Shown here: positions 105 to 37,000 of the stretch, piece by piece
Layout: each line of letters begins with the position of its first letter
Numbering within the stretch: position 1 is the stretch's first letter
The notes under the pieces: model-generated
The model's input: only the letters and a program-made list of their open reading frames with translations
Told to the model about the DNA's origin: nothing
The model's database searches: none
Translations under genes and position numbers: made by a program
Assembly: GCF_030028105.1 (NCBI RefSeq)
Contig: NC_092384.1
Location: 12,674,316-12,738,315, forward strand
Reading direction: 5' to 3'
Length of the DNA: 64,000 nucleotides
Source: Mobula birostris
Lineage: Eukaryota

Positions 105-1044
105 ATTTCTTCAAATTTTACCATCTTAATTAATGGACCCGAGGTTAATTTAATGAAAATCATTTAACATTTTTCCCATTTTCTGTTCCGTAGCTGCTCC
201 AACTCCATTGGATATTTTCGCAACAAATACTACAGCTGCAACTTTCATTCTCGTGTCATTCCGGCGTAGTATTTGTCGAGACTTGGACACAGCAACGCTT
301 CGTTGCCTGCTTGTATTCCGCCTTTCTTGAGAAATTGAGCTGTCGAGTCAACAGACTCTGAAGACTACCCGTATGCTTTTATTCTTAGTTTTTCTTTTCA
401 GCCACAGTGTAGGCTTCGCTTTCCATTTGAGAGATTTAGTTAACGGTCCTGCTTGGCCAAGCGTTTATTATTTTCTTTTCCTTTTAACACTGTTTGCATG
501 AAAGTCTGTGAACTATCGACCTGCTTCAGTGTCTCTCACTCCACACTTGCGCCTTATCCGAACCTGGTGACAGTATCAGTCTATGAAATTACAGATAAGA
601 TTATAAATGGTAGCAACATTTAAGGTGTATATATTTAGCTATTTTTGTTCGTCTACCAGCTTTAACGAAGTTGAACAGTTTATTTGTGTAACGTGTGGAA
701 TGTGGCCCCGTCATGCTCTGAAATACCAAAATTTAGGATGTATATTGCAACAGCCTAAAAAGTTCTAGTGTTGAACACCAAAGGTCACTTCAAAGCTTGA
801 AGGGTGCAATCAACAGAAAATCTATATTTTTAAAAATTTGCGTAGTGTTCCCTACATCTGCGTTTTGTGCAATGAAACTAGGTAAATGCTTGTTTGGAAA
901 TGATTATTTAACTTTTTTGTTTCTATTATATATTGCAACACGTGTTTTCCTAAATGCTACATGTTTCCTTTTGTTTGTTTGTGGGTTATCTAAAGAAATC
1001 CAGTCAAATCAAGGAAGAAATTTTATGCCTGGATTATTCTAGCA

Positions 1045-9169: not shown

Positions 9170-9218
9170 ATGTCAAGTATGCTGCTCCTCCTGGCAGTCA
9201 GTTGGAACATTTACATAG
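9170..9218 (+). CDS. Exon 1: signal peptide MSSMLLLLAVSWNIYI
   Basis: ATG in context GCAGGATGT, hydrophobic run, phase-1 donor ATAG|gtatag, typical of Ig-superfamily leader exons. Confidence 0.75.
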
Positions 9219-12200
9219 GTATAGCTTTATTCATTTTCTGCGTTCCATAATTTATAAATCAATCTCTGGTTAGCTTCCATGATATTGAGTCTAACTGTGA
9301 TTCAGGTGTACAGTCGGTCACATTTATTAAAAAATTCATTTCATTGTTAACTTAACCAACCTAACTTTTCCTTCACAGCTGCGGATCAGATTACGTTCAG
9401 TGTAACTCAATTGCCCAAAGAAGCGGTTGTATCCAAAGGAGGGAACGTCACGTTCTACTGCTTATTTCCCATTTCTCAGGATCAATCCTGGACGAAAGTG
9501 CATTGGTGGAAACAGGGCGAGAATAATTACCAACGGACAGGCATCGGCAACAGAAAAAGTTCTGGTCTGAGAGGTACAAGAACTTGGTACTTTGAGTTGC
9601 AACAAGTAATGATCCAAGATTCTGGACTGTATTTCTGTTCAGTGACCCGCAAAGGACTGTCTGCAAGAAATGGAACTGGTTCACTTCTAAAAGTGAATGG
9701 TAAGTTAAATTAATAGGCGAATAAATTATCCATTAACTATAAAGAATATATGCCAAGAAACAGACGCTTATGAAGATGTCCTTTATCATTCATTCTCCAT
9801 CGCTCGATCCACTCTTTGCGAATACGAGAGGGTCTGAAGGGTTGCAAGGAATCACCAGATCCACAAAATATGCCATAATCTGCAGTCTGTTCTCTATTAT
9901 TAGCAACCAGAGATGTCACGTTACTTAGAACATAGAATATAGAACATAGAATAGTACAGCATAGTACAGGGCCTTCGGCCCACAATGTTGTGCCGACCCT
10001 CAAACCCTGCCTCCCATATAAGCCCCCACCTTAGATTCTTCCATATACCTGTCTAGTAGTCTCTTAAACTTCACTAGTGTATCTGCCTCCACCACTGACT
10101 CAGGCAGTGCATTCCACGCACCAACCACTCTCTGAGTAAAAAACCTTCCTCTATTATCCTCCTTGAACTTCCCAACCCTTACCTTAAAGCCATGTCCTCT
10201 TGTATTGAGCAGTGGTGCCCTGGGGAAGAGGCGCTGGCTTTCCACTCTATCTATTCCTCTTATTATCGTGTACACCTCTATCATGTCTCCTCTCATCCTC
10301 CTTCTCTCCAAAGAGTAAAGTCATAGCTCCCTAAACCAGGCAGCATCCTGGTAAATCTCCTCTGTACCCTTTTCAATGCTTCCATATCCTTCCTATAGTG
10401 ATGTGACCAGAACTGGACACGATACTCCAAGTGTGGCCTAACCAGAGTTTTATACAGCTGCATCATTACATCGCGACTCTTAAACTCTATCCCTCGACTT
10501 ATGAAAGCTAACACACCATAAGCTTTCTTAACTACCCTATCCACCTGTGAGGCAACTTTCAGGGATCTGTGGACATGTACCCCGAGATCCCTCTGCTCCT
10601 CTACACTACCAAATATCCTGCCATTTACTTTGTACTGTTACTGTTTTAATCCTTATTCCTCTATGCCTTTCCATGGATCTGTGATACAGAAATATCTGTC
10701 TGTAAATTCCAAAGAATGATGCTATATGGAGAATCATTGGATTATAGTAGATCAAATGGTAAAGGGTTGCCAAATAAGGATATAATCCTTCCAATAGTAG
10801 TGGCGGCAACGAAGGGTAATCAAGCATGAAAACTTTGCAATTCCTTACTGAAATCTCTCAGCACCTCCATTTTTTGAAGACAGTGCTTCAAAATATCACA
10901 AATTTCAAAATTTGTTTAGCCTCTGATCGGTTCCCTTGTGGCACTTTATTTCTCCCTCCGCTGTTTGTTTTTTGAAAGGGCTTATGTGAAACGCAATGGA
11001 TATAATTTCCTGAATAAATTAGTTACACGATAAACGTTCCTGTTTTTTGGAACTTGAAATTAGGCAATGATAAACACGAGCGTAGGATGTTATAAAATCA
11101 AATCATAAATCCTAAAGTTAATTAGACAGTCTACTTGCTTAATTCCGGAAAGATGTATTCAAAAATGACATGTTTCAAAATCTTACTCTTCGTGATTTTT
11201 ATAAATGACCTGGATGAAGAAGTGGAGGGATGGGTTAGTACGTTTGCTGATGACACAAAGGTTGGAGGTGTTGTGGATAGTGTGGAGGGTGGTTACAGGC
11301 TACAGCAGGATATTGACAGCAAGCAAAACTGGGCTGAGAAGTGGCAGATGGAGTTCAACCCAGATAAGTGTGAACTGGTGCATTTTGGTAGGTCAATATG
11401 ATGGCAGAATATAGTATTAATGGTAAGACTCTTGGCAGTTTGGAGGATCAGATGGATCTTGGGGTCCGAGTCCATAGGACGCTCAAATCAGCTGGGCAGG
11501 TTGACTCTGTGGTTAAGATTGGCTTTCATCAATTGTGGAATGGAATTTTGGAGCCGAGAGGTAATGTTGCAGCTATATAGGACCCTGGTCAGACCCCACT
11601 TGGAGTACTGAGCTCAGTTCTGGTTGCCTTACTATAGGAAGGATGTGGAAACCATACAAAGGGTGCAGAGGAGATTTACAAGGATGTTGCCTGGATTGGG
11701 GAGCATGCCTTATGAGAATAGGTTGAGTGAACTCGGCCTTTTCTCCTTGGAGCGACGGAGGATGAGAGATGACCTGACAGAGTGTATAAGATGACGAGAG
11801 GCATTGATCGTGTGGATAGTCAAAGGCTTTTTCCCAAGGCTGAAATGGTTGCCACAAGAGGACACAGGTTTAGGGTGCTGGGAAGTAGGTACAGCGGAGA
11901 TGTCAGGGGTAAGGATTTTACGCAGAGAGTCGTGAGTGCGTGGAATAGGCTGCCGGCATCGGTGGTGGAGGCGGATACGATAGGGTCTTTTAAGGGACTT
12001 TTGGATAGAGCTTAGAAAAATAGAGGGCTATAGGTAAGCCTTGTAATTTCTAAGGTCGGGACATGTTCGGCACAATTTTGTGGGCCGAAGGGCCCGTATT
12101 GTTCTGTAGGTTTTCTATCTTTCTATATTTCAAAAACACGGTTTGAAATGACCTCATCTGACCTCAGAACAATATTCCTCCCCATTCAAGAAAAAAACTG

Positions 12201-15200
12201 CGAGTGTTCCCCACTCCCTCCGGCAAAGTGCATAGTTCTTGTATTATGCAAACCAGACTGTTGTCGAATAATCCGAATGTTGTTTAACCGGTCTGAGATA
12301 ATATTTCATACACTATTACATATTTTATATTCTACCTGCTTACCTATAAAAGTAAACTTCCTGCGCCATCCTCTGTTGCCACTTTACAGGAACTTGAGTC
12401 TAAAGGTTTGACCGTTGAAAACATTTCTTAGCACCCCAGCATTTATTGTATGTTTCCTGCCCCCTTATGACTTCCCAATAGGCATTACATGAAACTTGTC
12501 TGGATTAAGGCCCAAGTTCCAAAGCCTCTACCACTGTAATCGAATCTCTTACTGATTAATGTATTATTTATTGATGAGAAGTCGTTGAGAAGTATAGATT
12601 AAATGTAACGGATTTGAAAGGGAATTACTCGGCATGGTGAACTGGAGCGTGTAAAACTCAAAACTAAAGCGAGCATACTTTCAACAAATTTCATAGTTTG
12701 CAAATGGTATGATGCTGCTAGCCGACGTAGTTGGAAACAATATATCATTTTCACCCACTTCTGTACCACGACAGGGAATTTTATGATGTAGCAGCTGACT
12801 TACTCATTTTCACATCATTGTACTGCAGTTCAGTGTTCACTGTCCGTGAGAATCAAATTCTGTTTCGTCGAGCTATTGACTCTTTGAGGGTTTTCTTCGG
12901 AAAACCACAATATGAATATCCGAAGTGGCGTCATTATCGCTGAGATAGTGAGAAACAGCAAATGCTGTCGTGTAGTATGAACATGAATTGGGCATTAATA
13001 ACTGATATAGAATCTATTAATATCATTCCTTCAAATGCAACCTTCAGAATTAATAGACTTGTGCTTAATTAACGGGAAGTATTTCACTATCGCAACATCA
13101 TTTAATATGTTTTCCACTATCTGTTCCGCAGCAGTTCCAACTCCACTGAAGATTTCCGCGAAAAGAAATTCAGCTACAACTTTCATTATCGTGTGTGAAA
13201 CATCTGCCTTTTATCCCAAGAATTTCTCGCTTACTTGGTATAAAAATGGCATTGAAATAGCATTAGGCATACACACCAAGGTAAGGAAGGGCAACGACGG
13301 ACTTTATGTGGTTTCGAGCAACTTGAAGGAGACACAGCCGGTCCAGAACGACACAAATTATACCTGTTCGGTGTCTCATGTCTCCCTCAATATTTCAGCG
13401 GTGGCAGTCTATTCTATTTCCAAATCTAACCAAGGTACGAGGCCATTTCTTGTTAATATATCAAATATACATACAATATACTATCACTATTTGTTACTGG
13501 TCGCGAGGAAAATTCAGCTTAATTGAATTGAAAATGTTAAGTACAACGTAGTATTGAAGGCTTTTATTTAATATCGAATTCCATGTGTTGCAAGGCAGTA
13601 AACAATGAGCGCATTGTCCCGTGACTGTCATTTACATTCAAACTCTTTTCTATATTTTACAACTTAGAGAAACAAGTGCATCTATTTTAATAATTTGCGT
13701 TTCCACCCATGTTATTTGATGTTTTTTTTTTCTGTGCACTGGTTGATGACCAGAATTCCATCCTACACCAGTAATTCCGTTCCTTTCAGTTGCAGTGTTT
13801 GAAGAAGTTTCGGTTTGACCTCGAACTTCCATCATGTTTCACAGACATACACACACACACACACACACACAGAGGCAGGAAGATTCCCACTGTTGCTCGG
13901 GTTATTAGTACTATCACTTGCTGAAATTTCCAATACATATTTCTTAATTTCTATCCGTTCAAAATGAAAGGCGGGTTTGCCATCTTCGATATGATTGTGT
14001 CGCAGTGGTGTGTGTGTGGGGAGGGGGGGAGTGGCTGGGTTTATAACATAACAAGATATGATTTAATATATTATCAATCTCTGAATGGGAAAATTGTTTC
14101 AGACTCTTCCCAACCCCACCCACAATACTCCTATCATGTTTGTTGAGCAGCCTTGAGTTACAGGGAGTCTCAGGTCAATTCAACATAATTCAGCTGTCCG
14201 ATGGAAGAACAATCTCTGGGTTTATTTTGCTAAAAAAAAATGTCGCCATGCATTTTATTTACTTTTTCTCTCTTATTTCTTCCCTAATCTGTGCTGCGGG
14301 TTTATCCGCTTATTCACACACCCCAACGCCGTCCCAGCACAAGCACCAGCAGCCATCCTTCACCTACTCCCAAAAACGTGAATTATGTAATTACTTCGCA
14401 GCTTCCACAACGTATATTCTTACAATCTCCAGGTTCCTCTGGAAAAACCCTTTCCTCTTGGGTTCCCGGTTGTGCGGTGGGTGGACTGGCGTTTCTACTA
14501 CTGATAATCATCATTGGGACGTGGTACCGAAAGCAGGAAAATAAGGGTAAGTTTTAAAGAACATCTTTCAAATCTACAGTCAGGACAAAAAAAAAAACAA
14601 CAAACAAGAGGAAAAACATTTCAGCGATTTCAATGGAGCTTCAGTACTCTTTTTCACCTCCAAAGTCTGTATCACGTATTTCAGACATTTAATAGAAGCC
14701 AGTCATTCTATTCTCCGCCAGAAATTGAAAAGAGAACATTAACTGGTACTGTTTCGAAGCCACCGAAATAACAACCAGAAATTCAGCATGAGCTCCGACG
14801 GACTGCGGAAACAATGGAAGATTCTGTAAGGATTATATCAAAGATAGTAAAACCCATTTACTCTTTCAGCCAAGGGATTTGGTGCAACCTGCGGCGGAGT
14901 GTTTGGAACCCACGTTATTTATGAGATACCTGATAAAATGCTCAACCAAAATACTCAGTCGTGCATGCAAGACTGTGACATGAAATAGCTGTTCCATTCT
15001 CTACCCTTGTATTCCATTGGTATCCCGAGCGATTACTTTCATTTCCGGATTGGAGTAAGCAAGATCTGCAGATACACATATAGGTAGCGAATCTTCGGTC
15101 CGTTGTGTTTTCCGCCTCCCCTCGCAAGATTCCTATTGATCCGACGCTCCAATTTATTTTCCTGTAACGTTATGCTCACTATGTCCTGCGAAATGCACAC

Positions 15201-18200
15201 ACTTCAGGAAATTTAAAGTCGCCTAACCTGTATGAGTATGGATGCGGGAGGACTGTGGTGCATCTTAGAGAAACACATGTCATTACTTGGATGACGTGGT
15301 AGCATCTGATATTACAGGTCCACTGTAATTCATCCCTACAATCACCAAGATCCTATTCTGTAGTGAATACTGAACCGATCGCCGGAATTCTAGGCACTTC
15401 CTATTGCGCCACTGTGACATGTTTCATAAATATAATTATCCTTATCACAAGATTCCACAGATGCTGAAATTAGTGTATTACTATAAATATCTTTGTAATC
15501 ACTGAGGTAACAACTCGAGTCAATGGTGCTACATTTTCATGTCATATTTCGTTTCAGGTAAAGAGGAATGCGGTCCGGAAGCGAATCGACGTGAGGTTCG
15601 TTCATGCATTCATTTAGTACCGTATATTGTGGCCGTTCAATGGATGATGTGATAGGGACAGAATTAACGATATTCACATTATAACCAATAGTTATTAATC
15701 CAGTCAAGATGAAAAGAAAAGCTTACAAAAGATTCAAAAAATACTAAGTAATGATAGAGATCTAGAAGATTATAAGGCTAGCAGGAAGAGCTTAAGAATG
15801 AAATTCAGAGAGCCAGAACGGGCCATGGATAAAAGAAAACCACAAGGCATTCTACAAGTATGTGAAGAGCAAGAGGATAAAATGTGAGAGAATAAGACCA
15901 ATCAAGTGTGATAGTGGAAAAGTGTATATGGAACCGGAGGAGATAGCTGAGGTACTTAATAAATACTTTCTTCGGTATTCCCTACGGAAGGGATCTTGGT
16001 AATTATAGGGATGACTTAGAGCAGATTGTAAAGCTTGAACATATAGAAATTAAGAAAGAAAATGTGCTGGAGCTGTTGGAAAGCATCAAGTTTGATAAGT
16101 CTCCGGGACCGGACGAGATGTACCCCAGACTACTGTGGGAGGCGAGGGAGGGGATTGCTGAATCTCTGGCAATGATCTTTGCATCATCAGTGGGAATGGG
16201 AAAGGTTCCGCAGGATTGGGGGGTTGCAGATGGTGTTCTCTTATTCAAGAAAGGAGGTAGAGATAGACCAGGAAATTATAGACCAGTGAATCTTTATCAT
16301 AATCCGGTCCGTGAAGTCAGTATTCCGGTTCATGGTCTGGTCCGTGGGCTCCGGACTCCGGGTCTTTCGGCTGTCCCTTGTACCAGTTGGGCTTAATCAT
16401 AGGCACCTGATACTCGTCTTGAGGTTGGGAATATAAGTGGCCCTGGGTTCGAGTGTGGTTGCTGGTTTATCTCGTCAGTATCCCGTCCTCACCTCCGTGG
16501 GGTAAGTCAGGCTGTCTTTGCCGTTACCCTGCAGCTGGATCTGTTCCTTGCCTCCGTTGGGTAAACCAAGCCGTCTTTGGCATTACCCTGAGGCTGAACT
16601 GTTCCCTTCCCTTCCTCTTCCTTCTGAAGCCTTGCTTGCAACCTGTGTCTGGAGCCTTGCCTGCAACCTTATCAAATTCAACCATCGGAGTGAGACCGGA
16701 GCCTTGCTGTGTCAAGATAAAGAACTGTCTATCGTTGGGCTGGAGCTGTCTCTGTATCCACGCCTACGCTAGGTAGGTCCGGCCGTTTACTGCTACCTAA
16801 TATTGGGAACCGTCTCGTCGTGTTCAGCATTCTGTGTGTGAGTCCTGGCCCTATGTCCTGTTCCCATGGAGGGGTCCCGGCTCTGTGTTCCATGTCCTTG
16901 TGTTCCTGTCTCTCAAGTCCAAGGCTCCATGTTCCCGTGCTCTAGACCAAGGCTCTGTGTTCCTGTCCTCCCTAAGACCACGACTCTGTGGTCTGCGTTC
17001 CTGTCGTTGCAAATCCAGGGTTCCGAGGTTCCTGTCGTCCCAAGACCAAGGCTCAGCTGTTCCTGAGTACCAAGTCAAGGCTTCGTGTTCTCGTCCTGTC
17101 CATGTGCTTCATCCTGTGCTGGAGATCCCTCGTTCTGAACTGGAGTTCCTTCGTCTTGTCTAGGAGTCTCTCGTTCTGTCCTGTAGCTTCACCTAGTCCT
17201 GTCTCCCAAGACCACGTCATGTCTTCGCTTAGTTCTGGAGTCCGAGCCCGAGTCAAGACCCAGGTTCTGGGTCATTGTCTTGTCTCTGGCTCGGATTCCG
17301 AACTGAAGCCTCGTCATGTACTCGCCTCGAAGAACCCAAGCCTCAAAATGTCCTTGCCTCGAAGAACCCAGGCCATGAAGAACCTAAGACATGTCCAGTC
17401 CTGTAGCCACGTCATGTCTTTCCCTACTTCTGAGGTCCGAGCCCGAGTCAAGACCCAGGTTCTGGATCCTTGTCCAGTCTCCGGCTTGGGGTCCAAGCCC
17501 AGGCTCCTAGTTCCCAGTTCCTTGTCCTGGTCCCGCTTGCCTAGCCAATGTCCTAGCCCAAGTTGGTGTTCTTGTCCCAGCTCGCTTGTCAAGTCCTGTT
17601 CCTGTTCCTATCTACAGTAGATAATATTGTGAAAAGATTCAGAGAATTCAGAGACATCTCAGTGCGTAAAGGGCAAGGTCGGAAACCACTGTTGAATGTG
17701 CGTGATCTTCGAGCGCTCACGCGGCACTGCCTAAGAAACCGTCATGCTACTGTGACAATTATAGTCACCTGGGCTCGGAAGTACTTCGGAAAACCATTGT
17801 CACTCAACACAGTCCGTCGCTGCATCCAGAAATGCAACTTGAAACTGTATTACGCAAGGAGGAAGCCATACATCAACTCTATGCAGAAACGCCAGTGAGT
17901 TCTCTGTGCCGGAGCTCATCTCAGACGGACCGAAAGACTGTGGAACCGTGTGCTGTGGTCAGATGAGTCCACATTTCAGCTAGTTTTCGGAAAAAACAGA
18001 CTTCGAGTTATCCGTGCCAAAGATGAAAACGACCATCCAGATTGTTATGAGCGAAAGGTGCAAAAGCCAGCATTTGTGATGGTATGGGGGTGCATCAGTG
18101 CCCATGGCATGGGTGAGATGCATGTATGTGAAGGTACCATTGACTTTGAGGCGTATATTAGGATTTTAGAGAGACATATGTTGCCATCAAGGCGACGCCT

Positions 18201-19455
18201 CTTCCCGGACGTCCATGCTTATTTCAGCAGGACAATGCCAGACCACATTCTGCACGGGCTACAACAGCGTGGCTTTGTAGAAACAGAGTGCGTGTGCTTG
18301 ACTGGTCTGCTGCCAGTCCAGATCTATCTCCTATTGAAAATGTATGGCGCATCATGAAAAGGAGAATCAGACAACGGAGACCACGGACTTTTGAGCAGCT
18401 GAAGTCTTATATCAAGCAAGAATGGACAAAATTTCCAATTGCAAATCTACTACAATTAGTATCCTTAGTTCCAAAACGATTAAAAAGTGTTATTAGAAGG
18501 AAAGGTGATGTAACATAATGGTAAACATGCCTCTGTCCCAACTTTTGTTGAGTGTGTTGCAGCCATCAAATTCTAAATCTGTGTATGTTTACAAAATACA
18601 ATTAACTTGGTCAGTAAAACTATTGAAAATCTTTTTTTGTACTTTTTTCAGTTAAATAAAGGTTCACGTGAATTAACATATCACAGATTTTTGTTTTTAT
18701 TGCATTTTGGAAAATATCTCAACTTTTCTGGAAATACATTTCACCCAATGGACTTAAATGGTGTAAGCTAAGTTATTTCTTATTTTGTCAATGTACCTTG
18801 ATAACTGTTGTCATTTTTTTTTGAATTTAGTAGAATAATTTTATTTTTTTTATGTATTTGAAGCTGTCCAGCTTTTAAAACCTTTCATTGAAGGCCAATA
18901 GTCACATGTTTAATTTAATAGCTACAATGCCTTCACATTCGTAGTTTTATGCGTATAAATACGTATATTAATCTATCTCAAATTTAGGTAAATCTATTTA
19001 ACATTTGAAAATAATACTGAACAAATTAAGCTAAATAGCCAAATAACAATTGTTCGTCCCAAACTGTGCAGAAAACGGAATCTCCGATAGCTTGTTACTC
19101 CGCCGTAGACTTCAGGAGATTTAAGAATCCAGGACGAAAAGGCGATCGTGAAAAAATCGCATTTGGTCAGGTGAGGCTATGTAATAAGTCAGCGAAAGCG
19201 ATAGTGATTGAAACGGCAGAAGAAATGATTGTCATGGAAGGCGAGCAGAAACATACACAGAGCGTAAACAACTATCTAACATTATTTTTGTTATGTTTAC
19301 AGACAGTACAAGAAAATTCAAATGACGAGTTGTCTTATGCGACCTTGACATTGACTGGAAGTAAGAACCGGTGGAATACAGAATATGCTGGGCTGCAGAC
19401 ACACAAACAAATGGGAGAAACTGAGGTTGTTTATTCTAAAGTAAGGTCAAGCTAG
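9170..19455 (+). CDS. Spliced Ig-superfamily inhibitory receptor gene (leader-V-C1-TM-ITIM; SIRP/VJ-C1-like). Model A exons 9170-9218, 9379-9699, 13132-13434, 14433-14546, 15558-15595, 19303-19455; 978 nt, 325 aa
   Basis: All introns are GT-AG and exon phases are compatible (1,1,1,1,0). Canonical V and C1 cysteine/tryptophan motifs, a hydrophobic TM segment and ITIM motifs occur in the expected order. Confidence 0.8.
9379..9699 (+). CDS. Exon 2: Ig V-set domain with germline-joined J-like strand
   Basis: Acceptor ctaacttttccttcacag, donor AATG|gtaagt. Reads ADQITFSVTQLPKEAVVSKGGNVTFYC...VHWWKQG...DSGLYFCSVTRKGLSARNGTGSLLKVN. Confidence 0.92.
9926..10636 (-). mobile_element. CR1 3' fragment in intron 2, with 6 bp TSD
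   Basis: CR1 ORF2 C-terminal ORFs 10000-10311 and 10293-10544; (TAGAACA)n tail; GTTACT at 9920-9925 and 10637-10642. Confidence 0.9.
11181..12131 (+). mobile_element. CR1 3' fragment in intron 2
   Basis: LLFVIFINDLDEEVEGWVSTFADDTK RT motif (FADD), ORF2 C-terminus, (TATGTTTC)-like tail. Confidence 0.9.
13132..13434 (+). CDS. Exon 3: Ig C1-set domain
   Basis: Acceptor ttccgcag (tandem NAGNAG, alternative start 13135), donor CAAG|gtacga. Reads VCETSAFYPKNFSLTWYKNG...DGLYVVSSNL...YTCSVSHVSL (FYP..W..NG and YxCxVxH C1 motifs). Confidence 0.92.
13849..13871. repeat. (AC)n microsatellite in intron 3
   Basis: acacacac... read directly. Confidence 0.9.
14433..14546 (+). CDS. Exon 4: stalk, uncharged transmembrane segment, basic stop-transfer
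   Basis: Acceptor tacaatctccag, donor AAGG|gtaagt. Reads GSSGKTLSSWVPGCAVGGLAFLLLIIIIGTWYRKQENK. Confidence 0.88.
14722..14825 (+). other. Candidate cytoplasmic exon (phase 1 to 0) containing an in-frame TAA at 14769-14771
   Basis: Acceptor tcattctattctccgccag, donor TCT|gtaagg. Reads EIEKRTLTGTVSKPPK*QPEIQHELRRTAETMEDS. Confidence 0.45.
15558..15595 (+). CDS. Short cytoplasmic exon (GKEECGPEANRRE using donor at 15596, or VKRNAVRKRID using donor at 15591)
   Basis: Acceptor catatttcgtttcag; two adjacent donors GAC|gtgagg and GAG|gttcgt, each in frame with the terminal exon under one splice model. Confidence 0.55.
15695..16294 (+). mobile_element. CR1 ORF2 internal fragment (intronic)
   Basis: LELLESIKFDKSPGPDEMYPRLLWEARE...LLFKKGGRDRPGNYRPV. 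Confidence 0.88.
16295..17610 (+). mobile_element. LTR-like element with internal short tandem repeats (intronic)
   Basis: Begins tatcataatccggtcc, where an LTR would usually start TG. Shares motifs (ctccgtggggtaagtcagg; gtccgagcccgagtcaagacccagg) with 39840-41210, which ends in TGTGACA. Confidence 0.55.
17611..18735 (+). mobile_element. Tc1 transposon, 5'-truncated, disrupted transposase (intronic)
   Basis: IVKRFRE...GQGRKPLL, LWSDESTF, VWGCISAHG, DLSPIENVW motifs. Right end tttattgcattttggaaaatatctcaacttttctggaaat matches the ends of the 30.3-31.9 kb copy. Confidence 0.92.
19303..19455 (+). CDS. Terminal exon: cytoplasmic tail with LSYATL (ITIM), TEYAGL (ITSM-like) and VVYSKV (ITIM)
   Basis: Acceptor tttttgttatgtttacag (phase 0). 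Reads TVQENSNDELSYATLTLTGSKNRWNTEYAGLQTHKQMGETEVVYSKVRSS*. Confidence 0.85.
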   Translation, partial: TVQENSNDELSYATLTLTGSKNRWNTEYAGLQTHKQMGETEVVYSKVRSS

Positions 19456-28712: not shown

Positions 28713-31700
28713 GAATGGATTCTCAATATTCCTGGATTTCAGTGCTTTAAAAGGGATAGAGAGGGCGGAAAAAAGGGGAGGAGGGGTGACATTACTGGTC
28801 ATGGATACTATTACAGCTATAGAAAGGGTGGGTAATGTGGCAGGATCCTCTTTTGAGTCAATATGGGTGGAAGTCAGGAACAGCAAGGGAGCAGTTACTC
28901 TATTGGGGGTATTCTATAGGGCCCCTGGTAGCAGCAGAGATACAGAGGAGCAGATTGGGAGGCAGATTTTGGAAAGGTGCAAAAACAACAGGGTTGTTAT
29001 CATGGGTGACTTTAACTTCCCCAATATTGATTGGCACCTGATTAGTTCCAAGGGTTTAGATGGGGCAGAGTTTGTTAAGTGTGTCGAGGACGCATTCCTG
29101 TCACAGTATGTGGACAGGCCGACTAGGGGGAATGCCATACTAGATCTAGCACTAGGTAATGAACTGGGTAATGCTCAGTGGGTGAGCATCTGGGGGATAG
29201 TGACCACCGGTCCCTGGCCTTTAGCATTATCATGGAAAAGGATAGAATCAGAGAGGACAGGAAAATTTTTAATTGGGTAAGGGCAAATTATTATGCTACA
29301 AGGCTAGAACTTGCGGGTGTGAATTGGGATGATGTTTTTGCAGGGAAATGTACTATGGACGTGTGCTCCATGTTTAGAGATCTTTTGCAGGATGTTAGGG
29401 ATAAATTTGTCCTGGTGAGGAAGATAAAGAATGGCAGGGTGAATGAACCATGGGTGACAAGTGAGGTGGAAAATCTAGTCAGGTGCAAGAAGGCAGCATA
29501 CATGAGGTTTAGGAAGCAAGGATCAGATGGGTCTATTGAGGAATATAGGGAAGCAAGAAAGGAGCTTAAGAAGGGGCTGAGAAGAGCAAGAAAGGGGCAT
29601 GAGAAGGCCATGGTGAGTAGGGTAAAGGAAAACCCCAAGGCATTCTTCAACTATGTGAAGAAAAAAAGGATGACAGGAGTGAAGGTAGGACTGATTAGAG
29701 ATAAAGGTGGGAAGATGTATCTGGAGGCTGTGGAAGTGAGAGAGGTCCTCAATGAATACTTCTCTTCGGTATTCACTAATGAGAGGGAACTTGATGATGG
29801 TGAGAACAATATGAGTGAGGTTGATGTTCTGCAGCATGTTGATATTAAGGGAGAGGAGGTGTTGGAGTTGTTAAAATACATTAGGATGGATAAGTCCGCG
29901 GGGCCTAACGGAATATTCCCCCGGCTGCTCCACCAGGTGAGGGAAGAGATTGCTGAGCCTCTGGCTAGTATCTTTATGTCCTCGTTGTCCACAGGAATGG
30001 TACCGGAGGATTGGAAGGAGGCGAATGTTGTCCCCTTGTTCAAAAAAGGTAGTAGGGATAGTCCGGGTAATTATATACCAGTGAGCCTTACGTAAGTGGT
30101 GGGAAAGCTGTAGGAAAAGATTCTTAGAGATAGGATCTAGAGGCATTTAGAGAATCATGGTCTGATCAGGGACAGTCAGCATGGCTTTGCGAAGGGCAGA
30201 TCCTGTCAAACGAGCCTGATAGAGTTCTTTGAGTAGATGACCAGGCATATAGAGGAGGGTAGTGCAGTGGATGTGATCTACAAACTCCATTTCCAGAAGA
30301 GTTGGGATATTTTCCAAAATGCAATACAAACAAAAATCTGTGATATGTTAATTCACGTGAACCTTTACTTAACTGAAAAAAGTACAAAAAAAAAAGATTT
30401 TCAATAGTTTTACTGACCAAGTTAATTGTATTTTGTAAACATACACAAATTTAGAATTTGATGGCTGCAACACACTCAACAGAAGTTGGGACAGAGGCAT
30501 GTTTACCATTATGTTTAATCACCTTTCCTTTTAATAACACTTTTTAATCGTTTTGGAACTGAGGATACTAATTGTAGTAGATTTGCAATTGGAAATTTTG
30601 TCCGTTCTTGCTTGATATAAGACTTCAGCTGCTCAACAGTCCGTGGTCTCTGTTGTCTGATTCTCCTCTTCATGATGTGCCATACACTTTCAATAGGAGA
30701 TAGATCTGGCCTGGCAGCAGACCAGTCAAGCACACGCACTCTGTTTCTACAAAGCCACGCTGTTGTAGCCCGTGCAGAATGTGGTCTGGCATTGTCCTGC
30801 TGAAATAAGCATGGACGTCCGGGAAGAGACGTCGCCTTGATGGCAACATATCTGTCTTCTAAAATCCTAATATACGCCTCAAAGTCAATGGTACCTTCAC
30901 ATACATGAAACTCACCCATGCCGTGGGCACTGAAACACCCCCATACCACCACAAATGCTGGCTTTTGCACCTTTCGTTCATAACAATCTGGATGGTCATT
31001 TTCATCTTTGGCACGGATAACTCGACGCCTGTTTTTCCCGAAAACTAGCTGAAATGTGGACTCATCTGACCACAGCACACGGTTCCACAGTCTTTTGGTC
31101 CATCTGAGATGAGCTCGGGCACAGAGAACTCACCGGCGTTTCTGCATAGAGTTGATGTATGACTTCCTCCTTGCGTAATACAGTTTCAAGTTGCATTTCT
31201 GGATGCACCGACAGACTGTGTTGAGTGACAATGGTTTTCCGAAGTACTCCCGAGCCCAAGTGCCTATAATTGTCACAGTAGCATGACGGTTTCATAGGCA
31301 GTGCCGCATGAGAGCTCGAAGATCATGCGCATCCAACAGTGGTTTCCGACCTTGCCCTTTACGCACTGAGATGTCTCTGAATTCTCTGAATCTTTTCACA
31401 ATATTATCTACTGTAGATGTTGAAAGACCTAAATTCTCTGCAATCTTGTGTTGAGAAATGTTCCTTTTAAACTGACTAACAATTCTCTCACGAATTTTGG
31501 CACAAAGGTGTGAGCCACGACCCATCCTTGCTTGCAAAGACTGAGCCTTTGATGGACGCTACTTTTATACCCAGTCACGATACCTCACCTGCTACCAATT
31601 AGCCTGCTTAATGTGGAGTCTTCTAATCCGGTGTTACTTGAATATTCTGTGAACTTTTCAATCGTATTTTAACTCTGTCCCAACTTTTGTTGAGTGTGTT

Positions 31701-34000: not shown

Positions 34001-37000
34001 AGAAACCATAGAAACCATAGAAACTGCAGCACAGAAACAGGCCTTTTGGCCCTTCTTGGCTGTGCCGAACCATTTTCTACCTAGTCCCACTGACCTGCAC
34101 ACGGACCATATCCCTCCATACACCTCCCATCCATGTATCTGTCCAATTTATTCTTAAATGTTAAAAAAGAACCCGCATTTACCACCTTGTCTGGCAGTTC
34201 ATTCCATACTCCCACCACTCTCTATGTGAAGAAGCCCCCCTTAATGTTCCCTTTAAACTTTTCCCCCCTCACCCTTAACCCATGTCCTCTGGTTTTTTTC
34301 TCCCCTTGCCTCAGTGGTTTTTTTCTCCCCTTGCCTCAGTGCCTGCTTGCATTCATTCTATCTATACCCATCATAATTTTATATTCCTCTATCAAATCTC
34401 CCCTCATTCTTCTACGCTCCAGGGAATAAAGTCCTAACCTATTCAAACTTTCTCTGTAACTGAGTTTCTCAAGTCCCAGCAACATCCTTGTAAACCTTCT
34501 CTGCACTCTTTCAACCTTATTTATGTCCTTCCTGTAATTTGGTGACCAAAACTGAACACAATACTCCAGATTCGGCCTCACCAATGCCTATACAACCTCA
34601 TCATAACATTCCAGCTCTTATACTCAATACTTTGATTAATAAAGGCCAATGTACCAAAAGCTCTCTTTACCACCCTATCTACCTGTGACGCCACTTTTAG
34701 GGAATTTTGTATCTGTATTCCCAGATCCCTCTGTTCCACTGCACTCCTCAGTGCCTTACCATTGACCCTGTATGTTCTACCTTGGTTTGTCCTTCCAACG
34801 TGAAATACCTCACACTTGTCTGCATTAAACTCCATCTGCCATTTTGCAGCCCATTTTTCCAGCTGGTCCAAGTCCCTCTGCAGGCTCTGAAAACCTTCCT
34901 CGCTGTCTACTACACCTCCAATCTTTGTATCATCAGCAAATTTTCTGATCCAATTTCCCACATTATCATCCAGATCATTGATATAGATGACAAATAACAA
35001 TGGACCCAGCACTGATCCCTGTGGCACACCACTAGTCACAGGCCTCCACTCGGAGAAGCAATTCTCTACTACCACACTTTGGCTTCTTCCATTGAGCCAA
35101 TGTCTGATCCAATTTACCACTTCTCCATGTATACCTAGTGACTGAATTTTCCTAACTAACCTCCCATGCGGGACCTTGTTAAAGGCCTTACTGAAGTCCA
35201 TGTAGACAATATCCACTGCCTTCCCTTCATCCACTTTCCTGGTAACCTCCTCGAAAAACTCCAACAGATTGGTCAAACATGACCTACCACGCACAAAGCC
35301 ATGTTGACTCTCCCTAATAAGTCCCTGTCTATCCAAATGCTTGTAGATTCTGTCTCTTAGTACTCCCTCCAATAATTTACCTACTACCGATGTTAAACTT
35401 ACCGGCCTATAATTTCCCGGATTATTTTTCGATCCTTTTTTAAACAACAGAACAACATGAGCCACTCTCCAATCCTCCGGCACCTCACCTGTAGACAGCG
35501 ACATTTTAAATATTTCTGCCAGGGCCCCTGCAATTTCAACACTAGTCTCCTTCAAGGTCTGAGGGAACACCCTGTCAGGTCCCAGGGATTTATCCACTTT
35601 AATATTCCTCAAGATACCAAGGACCTCCTCCTTTTCGATCTGCACAGTTTCCATGAACTCACTACTTGTTTCCCCTAATTCCATAGACTTCATGCCAGTT
35701 TCCTTAGTAAATACATATGCAAAAAACCTAATTAAGATCTCCCCCATTTCCTTTGGTTCTGGACATAGCCGACCACTCTGATCTTCAAGAGGACCAATTT
35801 TATCCCTTACAATCCTTTTGCTCTTAATATAACTGTAAAAGCTCTTTCGATTATCCTTCACTTTGACTGCCAAGGCAACCTCATGTCTTCTTTTAGCCCT
35901 CCTGATTTTTTTCTTAAGTATTTTCTTGCACTTCTTATACTCCACAAGCACCTTATTTACTCCCTGCTTCCTATACATGTCATACAACTCCCTCTTCTTC
36001 TTTATCAGAGTTGCAATATCCCTTGAGAACCAAGTTCTTTATTCCTATTCACTTTGCCCTTAATCCTGACAGGAACATGCAAATTCTGCACTCTCAAAAT
36101 TTCTCCTTTGAAGGCTTCCCACCTACCGATCACATCTTTGTCAGAGAACAACCTGTCCCAATCCAAGCTTTTTAGATCCTTTCTCATTTCTTCAAATTTG
36201 GCCTTTTCCAGTTAAAAACCTCAACCCTAGGACCAGATCTATCCTTGTCCATGATCAAGTTGAAACCAATGGTGTTATGATCACTGGAACCAAAGTGCTC
36301 CCCTACACAGACTTCCGTCACTTGTCCTAACTCGTTTCCTAACAGGAGATCCAATATTGCATCCCCTCTAGTTGGTCCCTCTATATATTGATTTAGAAAA
36401 CTTTCCTGAACACATTTTACAAACTCTAAACCATCTAGACCCCTAACAGTATAGGAGTCCCAATCAAGATATGGAAAATTAAAATCCCCTACCACCACAA
36501 CTTTATGTTTCCTGCAGTTGCCTGCTATCTCCCTGCAGATTTGCTCTTCCAATTCTTGTTGACTATTGGGTAGTCTGTAATACAATCCCACTAATGTGGC
36601 CATACCTTTCCTGTTTCTCAGCTCCACCCATAAGGACTCAGTAGACAAGCCCTCTAATCTGTCCTGCCTGAGCACTGCTGTAATATTTTCCCTAACAAGC
36701 AATGCTACTCCCCCACCTTTCATTCCTCTGCCTCAATTACATCTGAAACATCGGAACCCTGGAATATTAAGCTGCCAGTCCTGCCCCTCCTGTAGCCAAG
36801 TTTCACTAATTGCTATAACGTCATAATTCCACGTGTCAATCCATGCCCTCATCTCATCCGCCTTCCCCGCAATACTCCTAGCATTGAAATATATACACCT
36901 CAGAAGATTTTTACCACCACTCACAACCTTTCTATTAGCGGATTTGCTTGAACTTTTAACAGCATTTATTTTCACCCCAGCCACACTGTCTGCTCTGGCA

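Follow-up and report, generated by a model that had tools for sequence, protein, structure and literature searches.

An intact seven-exon receptor gene in a manta-type ray

The 64,000-nt stretch of Mobula birostris DNA analysed here (the window) carries on its + strand, at 9170-19455, an intact seven-exon gene of this manta-type ray that encodes a 358-aa type I membrane protein. All coordinates are positions within the window. A first-pass annotation of this DNA had described a non-rearranging receptor composed of a V domain with its J-like strand, a C1-set domain, a transmembrane helix and immunoreceptor tyrosine-based inhibitory motifs (ITIMs). The gene structure, the Pfam assignments and a scan for recombination signals agree with that description.

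Exon 1 (9170..9218, +) comprises 16 codons plus 1 nt, begins with the ATG at 9170, encodes the first part of the leader and ends in phase 1 at a GT donor at 9219. Sixteen of the 17 N-terminal residues are identical to those of the Hypanus sabinus homologues P0005 and P0173, the sole difference being W12 versus G. The leader is split by a 160-nt intron and is completed by exon 2 (9379..9699, +; 321 nt, phase 1), which also encodes the whole V domain including the germline-joined J-like G strand NGTGSLLKV. The C1-set constant domain is encoded by exon 3 (13132..13434, +; 303 nt, phase 1), and a short stalk, the uncharged transmembrane helix and the start of the tail by exon 4 (14433..14546, +; 114 nt, phase 1). 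Two cytoplasmic exons follow. The first, exon 5 (15558..15595, +; 38 nt, encoding GKEECGPEANRRE), changes the phase from 1 to 0 and has counterparts in P0075, P0150, P0001, P0005 and P0173. The second, exon 6 (19072..19170, +; 99 nt, 33 codons, phase 0), encodes a degenerate ITIM-like site, ACYSAV, and has counterparts in P0075 and P0150. Exon 7 (19303..19455, +; AG acceptor at 19301-19302, stop codon at 19453-19455) encodes the end of the tail with the motifs LSYATL, TEYAGL and VVYSKV, and its product differs from P0075 at one residue. Exons 2 to 6 all have AG/GT boundaries. Phase-1 exons with AG/GT boundaries are the usual arrangement for domain exons of the immunoglobulin (Ig) superfamily.

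A near-identical homologue, P0075, is the RefSeq protein XP_062923447.1 of Mobula hypostoma, named 'tyrosine-protein phosphatase non-receptor type substrate 1-like' (a SIRP-alpha-like name), the model of which is truncated at its N-terminus. The 358-aa model is 97.4% identical to it over all 266 P0075 residues and 69% identical end to end to P0150, a full-length M. hypostoma paralogue. Both extra cytoplasmic exons were placed in the model because P0075 shows them between the transmembrane exon and the last exon. The first-pass annotation had proposed a 325-aa protein, which correctly included the 38-nt exon at 15558-15595 but lacked the 99-nt exon at 19072-19170; the corrected gene has seven exons and 358 codons for amino acids. 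A 312-aa, five-exon model, in which the transmembrane exon is spliced to an alternative acceptor at 19307, was dropped since P0075 and P0150 show the two extra cytoplasmic exons. Given the consistent exon phases, the strong domain E-values and the near-identical protein of a sister species, the locus is not a chance pattern.

Reading through the donor of exon 5 (15596-15650, +) gives ...REVRSCIHLVPYIVAVQWMM followed by a stop codon, which resembles the C-terminus of the Hypanus isoform P0001 (...SEVCSCVHIAPYNLVIQ). This resemblance suggests either a conserved tail-less product made by intron retention or an artefact shared by the gene predictions.

The V domain is joined to a J-like strand in the germline

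Pfam assigns the V exon to the V-set (30 bits, cut-off 26), and the exon extends unbroken from the remainder of the leader through the F-strand YFC and the J-like G strand to the donor site. The single exon for a V domain plus the G strand RNGTGSLLKV that had been noted earlier is thus present, and V and J are not split. We scanned both strands for recombination signal sequences (RSS), using a CAC-anchored heptamer (at least 6/7), a spacer of 12±1 or 23±1 and a nonamer (at least 6/9). No RSS-like site was found between 8800 and 13600 on either strand, and the whole 64 kb held six loose matches. The earlier statement that the exon lacks recombination signals therefore holds.

The G strand follows a motif shared by the relatives described below. 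Across 43 family members the pattern G-x-G-x-x-L-x-V is nearly invariant, with G98 invariant and G100, L103 and V105 at least 90% conserved, and the window's NGTGSLLKV satisfies the family motif G-N-G-T-G-S-x-L-x-V. In Ig and T-cell receptor (TCR) J segments, Phe or Trp precedes G-x-G. Here, Asn replaces that residue, and the resulting Asn-Gly-Thr at 9667-9675 creates an N-glycosylation sequon. The N-G-[ST] sequon is kept in 33 of the 43 family representatives. A glycan at the J-like motif would be hard to reconcile with canonical antigen-receptor V-V pairing, and the replacement of the J-motif Phe/Trp by a sequon suggests that the V domain may be free, as in VNAR or SIRP.

An AlphaFold model of the V domain, built on the family alignment, had a pLDDT of 87.9 and no predicted C'' strand. 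Its nearest structures were shark VNARs, followed by Ig V-kappa/lambda, TCR V (V-alpha), CD79b and CD8-beta, at ~20-25% identity. By sequence, the best solved relatives of the V domain were VNAR (E 4.9e-7), TCR-beta and PD-L1. SIRP d1 was absent from the best 60 PDB sequence matches and from the top Foldseek matches.

A single C1-set domain follows the V domain

The first-pass annotation had also reported a C1-set exon after the V exon, recognised by FYP..W..NG and YTCxVxH. Both motifs are present, as FYPKNFSLTWYKNG and YTCSVSH, and the assignment is borne out by Pfam (C1-set, 46.2 bits, E 5.8e-12, cut-off 21) and by structure. The AlphaFold model of the C1 domain (pLDDT 90.4, with the family alignment as input) matches classical C1-set domains at template modelling scores of 0.8-0.88. 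In a non-redundant structural search it gave Z-scores of ~13-14.6 with HLA-DP beta2, Ig CL, IgNAR C3/C1, UrIg2, SIRP-gamma d3 and B7-H6. For the predicted models, then, the structure searches confirm the C1-set and V-set folds but do not separate families, the C1 Z-scores forming a plateau with no single nearest family.

The window's C1 domain is 32-72% identical to those of 42 family members and keeps all the invariant residues C21, W35, C78 and H82. The exon fits the family consensus LVCxTAxFYP....LTWYKNG ... YTCxVSH. Between the V and transmembrane exons there is a single C1 exon, and tblastn detected no further Ig-like exon in the window.

The transmembrane helix is uncharged and the tail carries ITIMs

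Hydropathy peaks at residues 234-254, which form the uncharged transmembrane helix (GCAVGGLAFLLLIIIIG) encoded by exon 4; here and in the ITIMs of the tail the first-pass annotation was right. At 14466-14483 in this exon, Gly (GGT) followed by Cys stands where relatives of the activating type have Arg. The aligned membrane edge reads WVPGCAVGG in the window gene, WVPRSAMGG in Hypanus P0173 and P0005, and WILRCAMG in P0001. In many members of the family the Arg/Gly position is followed immediately by a Cys at the membrane edge.

The tail of ~105 aa contains two canonical ITIMs, LSYATL (Y320) and VVYSKV (Y352), a motif resembling an immunoreceptor tyrosine-based switch motif, TEYAGL (Y336), and the degenerate ITIM ACYSAV. 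The tail of the shark homologue P0145 has a canonical ITIM, VHYAAL, upstream of LTYATL, and VHYAAL is probably equivalent to the ACYSAV site of the window gene.

We infer the signalling of the receptor from these motifs. The V domain would bind a ligand, upon which Src-family kinases would phosphorylate the tail tyrosines; phosphatases of the SHP-1/SHP-2 type would then be recruited and cell activation would be damped. Relatives that carry the transmembrane Arg would signal in the opposite way, via an adaptor with an immunoreceptor tyrosine-based activation motif. Ligand binding, expression and cell type are predictions of the same kind.

The gene belongs to a large V-C1 family of cartilaginous fish

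With the V domain as query, an exhaustive HMMER search through 1.84 billion representatives returned 136 proteins at E<=1e-3, of which 52 were at E<=1e-10. Of these representatives of clusters at 50% identity, ~75 have an adjacent C1 domain like that of the window gene. All relatives whose names were retrieved come from cartilaginous fish: rays or skates (Mobula, Hypanus, Hemitrygon, Pristis, Narcine, Amblyraja), sharks (Scyliorhinus, Mustelus, Heterodontus, Heptranchias, Stegostoma, Chiloscyllium, Hemiscyllium) or the chimaera Callorhinchus. Word-indexed protein searches with full-length P0007, with the C1 region of P0150 (39 candidates only) and with full-length P0150 at E<=10 gave cartilaginous-fish relatives and a few weak matches from other vertebrates. 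The turtle and lizard matches were weak and were to the V domains only of proteins with multiple V domains; one further weak match, a Coregonus protein, is annotated as both V-set and C1-set. No bona fide SIRP, tapasin, PRARP or NKp30 sequence was among the matches of these word-indexed searches. As far as seen in the sequences searched, the family is confined to cartilaginous fish.

The RefSeq names of the members are inconsistent. Most are SIRP-alpha-like, and others are SIRP-beta-1-like, tapasin-related-like, CD276 homologue, MHC II beta-like, Ig lambda-like and NCR3LG1-like. The members that were looked up lie, within each species, on one large contig and have close accession numbers, which fits an arrangement in tandem clusters. 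The family is thus already predicted in the databases, and the window gene is one more copy of it and not a unique relic. A literature search found no paper on a shark, ray or chimaera V-C1 family.

Some RefSeq variants, P0022 (Amblyraja radiata), P0014 and P0147, show V-C1-C1, C1-V-C1 or V-V-C1 layouts. These may be true architectures, V-C1-C1 being the layout of SIRP, or the predictor may have fused adjacent genes of a tandem array.

Inhibitory and activating types are interspersed in the family tree

A maximum-likelihood tree was built from 59 V-C1 units, all of them family members; nine rows that were isoforms or near-duplicates were left out, as were all rows whose domains were incomplete or not adjacent. 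The window gene falls in a five-member ray clade (support 100/100) with P0173 (Hypanus, 86% identical), P0150, which has an ITIM tail, and P0001 and P0138, which have a transmembrane Arg and a short tail. This clade is nested in starred clades of 12 and 34. Members of the family have either an uncharged transmembrane helix with an ITIM tail, as the window gene does, or an Arg/Lys-bearing helix with a short tail. Automatically assigned labels for these inhibitory and activating types need at least 9-10 changes on the tree and cluster no more than shuffled labels do. In some pairs the ectodomains hardly differ, as in P0020 and P0022, where they are almost identical. Because near-identical ectodomains carry opposite signalling types, which is the defining pattern of paired immune receptors, the family appears to be one of paired inhibitory and activating receptors whose types are interspersed over the tree. 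The proposal that the gene represents a poorly characterised inhibitory receptor family of cartilaginous fish consequently stands as regards both the restriction to these fish and the dearth of literature, but the family is paired and not purely inhibitory.

Collectively, these results make it very probable that the window gene is an inhibitory-type member of a large, tandemly expanded V-C1 receptor family of sharks, rays and chimaeras. Several points weigh against this interpretation. The splicing and expression of the gene are backed solely by predicted proteins of related species, and the M. birostris protein itself was not found in the protein collections searched. The first ITIM-like site of the tail is degenerate, the classification by transmembrane charge and ITIMs across the tree is crude as well as automatic, and the ITIM-bearing form may not be the sole product of the gene.

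The gene lies in transposon-rich DNA

Apart from this gene and transposons, the window holds no other gene. The rest of it consists mainly of fragments of LINE (long interspersed nuclear element) reverse transcriptase/endonuclease and of Tc1-type transposase, which also fill the introns of the gene. LINE-type fragments lie in the introns at 9926-10636, 11181-12135 and 15697-16295, each with 5-10 more copies in the window at 65-92% identity. The last large intron holds a Tc1/mariner-type copy (17610-18735, +) whose open reading frame includes a transposase helix-turn-helix domain, and which is 95.5% identical to a second copy at 30289-31418 (-). A reverse-transcriptase open reading frame of 469 aa lies at 34581-35987 (-). 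At the start of the window, 1-69 and 156-256 (+) match the intron that precedes the C1 exon, and the initial 63 nt of the exon itself, at 75-79% identity. This copy keeps an acceptor-like site, ttccgtag, and similarity is lost after ~256. Judged by this alignment, it is a truncated remnant of a paralogous gene.

Introns full of LINE and Tc1 copies, the remnant of a paralogous C1 exon at the window start and the missing M. birostris protein are also what would be expected if the gene were itself an unexpressed or decaying copy, that is, a recent pseudogene in a transposon-rich cluster whose frame merely happens still to be open. However, all seven exons are open and have canonical splice sites, the protein is 97.4% identical across two Mobula species with no disruption of the frame, and every family-invariant residue is retained. 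We consider decay improbable and treat the gene as an intact member of the V-C1 family.

The family is as close to Ig light chains as to SIRP

Whole-chain PDB rankings were misleading, being dominated by multi-domain antibody heavy chains, titin and the like, and per-domain scores were used in their place. Many relatives carry SIRP-like names, and the gene might be a true SIRP-alpha orthologue or co-orthologue: a CD47-binding 'don't-eat-me' receptor from a lineage that expanded in cartilaginous fish and that lost, or never gained, the third domain. Some of the scores point this way. The best solved relative of P0150 is human SIRP-alpha, at 70.9 bits in one alignment that runs from the V domain into d2, ahead of SIRP-gamma (62.6), UrIg2 (62.4), Ig chains (<=52) and TAPBPR (47.7 bits). 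Language-model features rank SIRP-alpha clusters first (0.96), no single C1 domain scores higher against the V+C1 family profile than SIRP-alpha d3 (48.0 bits), and the skate member P0022 has V-C1-C1. The layout of the tail, ITIM ... TEY ..., and the presence of activating partners likewise resemble SIRP-alpha and SIRP-beta.

Other scores do not single out SIRP. VNAR, Ig V-kappa and TCR V rank first for the V domain. For the C1 domain alone, UrIg2 C3 (27.0 bits), MR1 alpha3 (25.6) and Ig lambda C (24.0) are about as close as SIRP d2/d3, which score 20-23 bits overall (SIRP-alpha d3 23.1, SIRP-gamma d2 22.5, SIRP-alpha d2 21.9). Against the V+C1 family profile, Ig lambda V-C reaches 72.3 and SIRP-alpha d1-d2 reaches 71.6 bits, followed by Ig kappa at 69.3, UrIg2 V-C1 at 59.1 and VH-CH1 at ~50. 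Moreover, the window gene has one C1 domain versus two in SIRPs, and the activating forms of the family use Arg and not the Lys of SIRP-beta. Tails with an ITIM plus TEY occur also in Siglecs, so the likeness of the tail to that of SIRP-alpha, which could be convergent, was given little weight. With Ig light chains at 72.3/69.3 bits versus SIRP-alpha d1-d2 at 71.6, the family does not group firmly within a well-described orthologue group, in keeping with the placement that the first-pass annotation had offered. SIRP orthology is unlikely on these scores. Even so, SIRP offers the best functional analogy for the V-C1 family and may plausibly be distantly related to it.

The same scores bear on a second possibility, that the gene is a relic close to the antigen-receptor precursor before rearrangement, of the UrIg/PRARP type, and not an ordinary innate paired receptor. 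UrIg and UrIg2 are non-rearranging shark VJ-C1 genes; in UrIg2 the leader is split and one VJ exon precedes C1 (PMC12227049), as in the window gene. UrIg2 is also the top whole-chain PDB match of the C1 exon, the V domain is nearest VNAR, Ig V-kappa and TCR V, and the family profile has no better match than Ig light chains. Against this, the 59.1 bits of UrIg2 V-C1 fall short of the scores of both SIRP-alpha and Ig light chains. At least three C1 domains are present in UrIg proteins: UrIg has three and is secreted, and UrIg2 has nine or more C domains in nurse and epaulette sharks (PMC12227049). The V-C1 family is a fast-diverging multigene expansion with signalling tails, whereas UrIg is, in our reading, single-copy and conserved. 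The sequon in place of the J-motif Phe/Trp in 33 of 43 members would also argue against V-V pairing of the antigen-receptor kind. A relic of this type is very doubtful.

In sequence terms the family is as 'antigen-receptor-like' as it is 'SIRP-like', in line with the argument, made where the link between SIRPs and antigen receptors is discussed, that SIRPs are close to the antigen-receptor precursor (PMC2785349). It is conceivable, though we give it little credence, that the V-C1 family is a surviving sister lineage of both SIRP and Ig: a non-rearranging, myeloid-type paired receptor that kept the V(J)-C1-transmembrane layout proposed for the receptor later invaded by the RAG transposon. Its members would in that case serve as living models of the antigen receptor before rearrangement.

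Discussion

Antigen receptors, MHC and a small number of associated proteins are the only places where C1-set domains occur. In sharks, rays and chimaeras there is a large and rapidly evolving family of V(J)-C1 proteins that do not rearrange, some of them apparently inhibitory and others activating. This family resembles Ig light chains as much as it does SIRP-alpha, and databases list it solely under inconsistent names that were assigned automatically. The origin of V-C1 receptors and the age of paired-receptor signalling could both be studied with this so far unexploited data set. The window gene adds a cleanly annotated member, probably inhibitory, with a corrected seven-exon model, and alone leaves this picture unchanged; the whole family merits phylogenetic and expression study more than the single copy does.

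Several known systems share parts of this design. Like Ig light chains and TCR chains, the window gene has a V(J)-C1 layout, a split leader and phase-1 exons, and its predicted V fold is near VNAR, V-kappa and TCR V-alpha. Unlike them, it has V and J fused in the germline with no RSS, a transmembrane helix and ITIM tail of its own, an Asn-Gly-Thr sequon in place of the J-motif Phe/Trp and no predicted C'' strand. ITIM-tailed members stand beside short-tailed members with a charged transmembrane helix in KIR/LILR, PILR, CD300, teleost NITR and skate MDIR. These families resemble the V-C1 family in their signalling logic and in the repeated switching between inhibitory and activating types, but they are built from V, I or C2-type domains and lack a V(J)-C1 unit. 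UrIg and UrIg2 (PDB 9dmx) also come from cartilaginous fish and combine a split leader and one VJ exon with C1-type domains; the window gene, in contrast, has one C1 domain, a transmembrane helix and ITIMs. As for PRARP (Fu et al. 2019, J Immunol; cited in PMC10751288), none of the named family relatives carries that name. As in the window gene, the V domain of SIRPs (human 2wng, 4i2x) is N-terminal, includes a J-like strand and adjoins a C1-set domain, in a type I membrane protein with ITIM tyrosines; like the V-C1 family, SIRPs have inhibitory and activating members with near-identical ectodomains. The family of sharks, rays and chimaeras differs from SIRP in being far larger and in having been seen so far only in cartilaginous fish.

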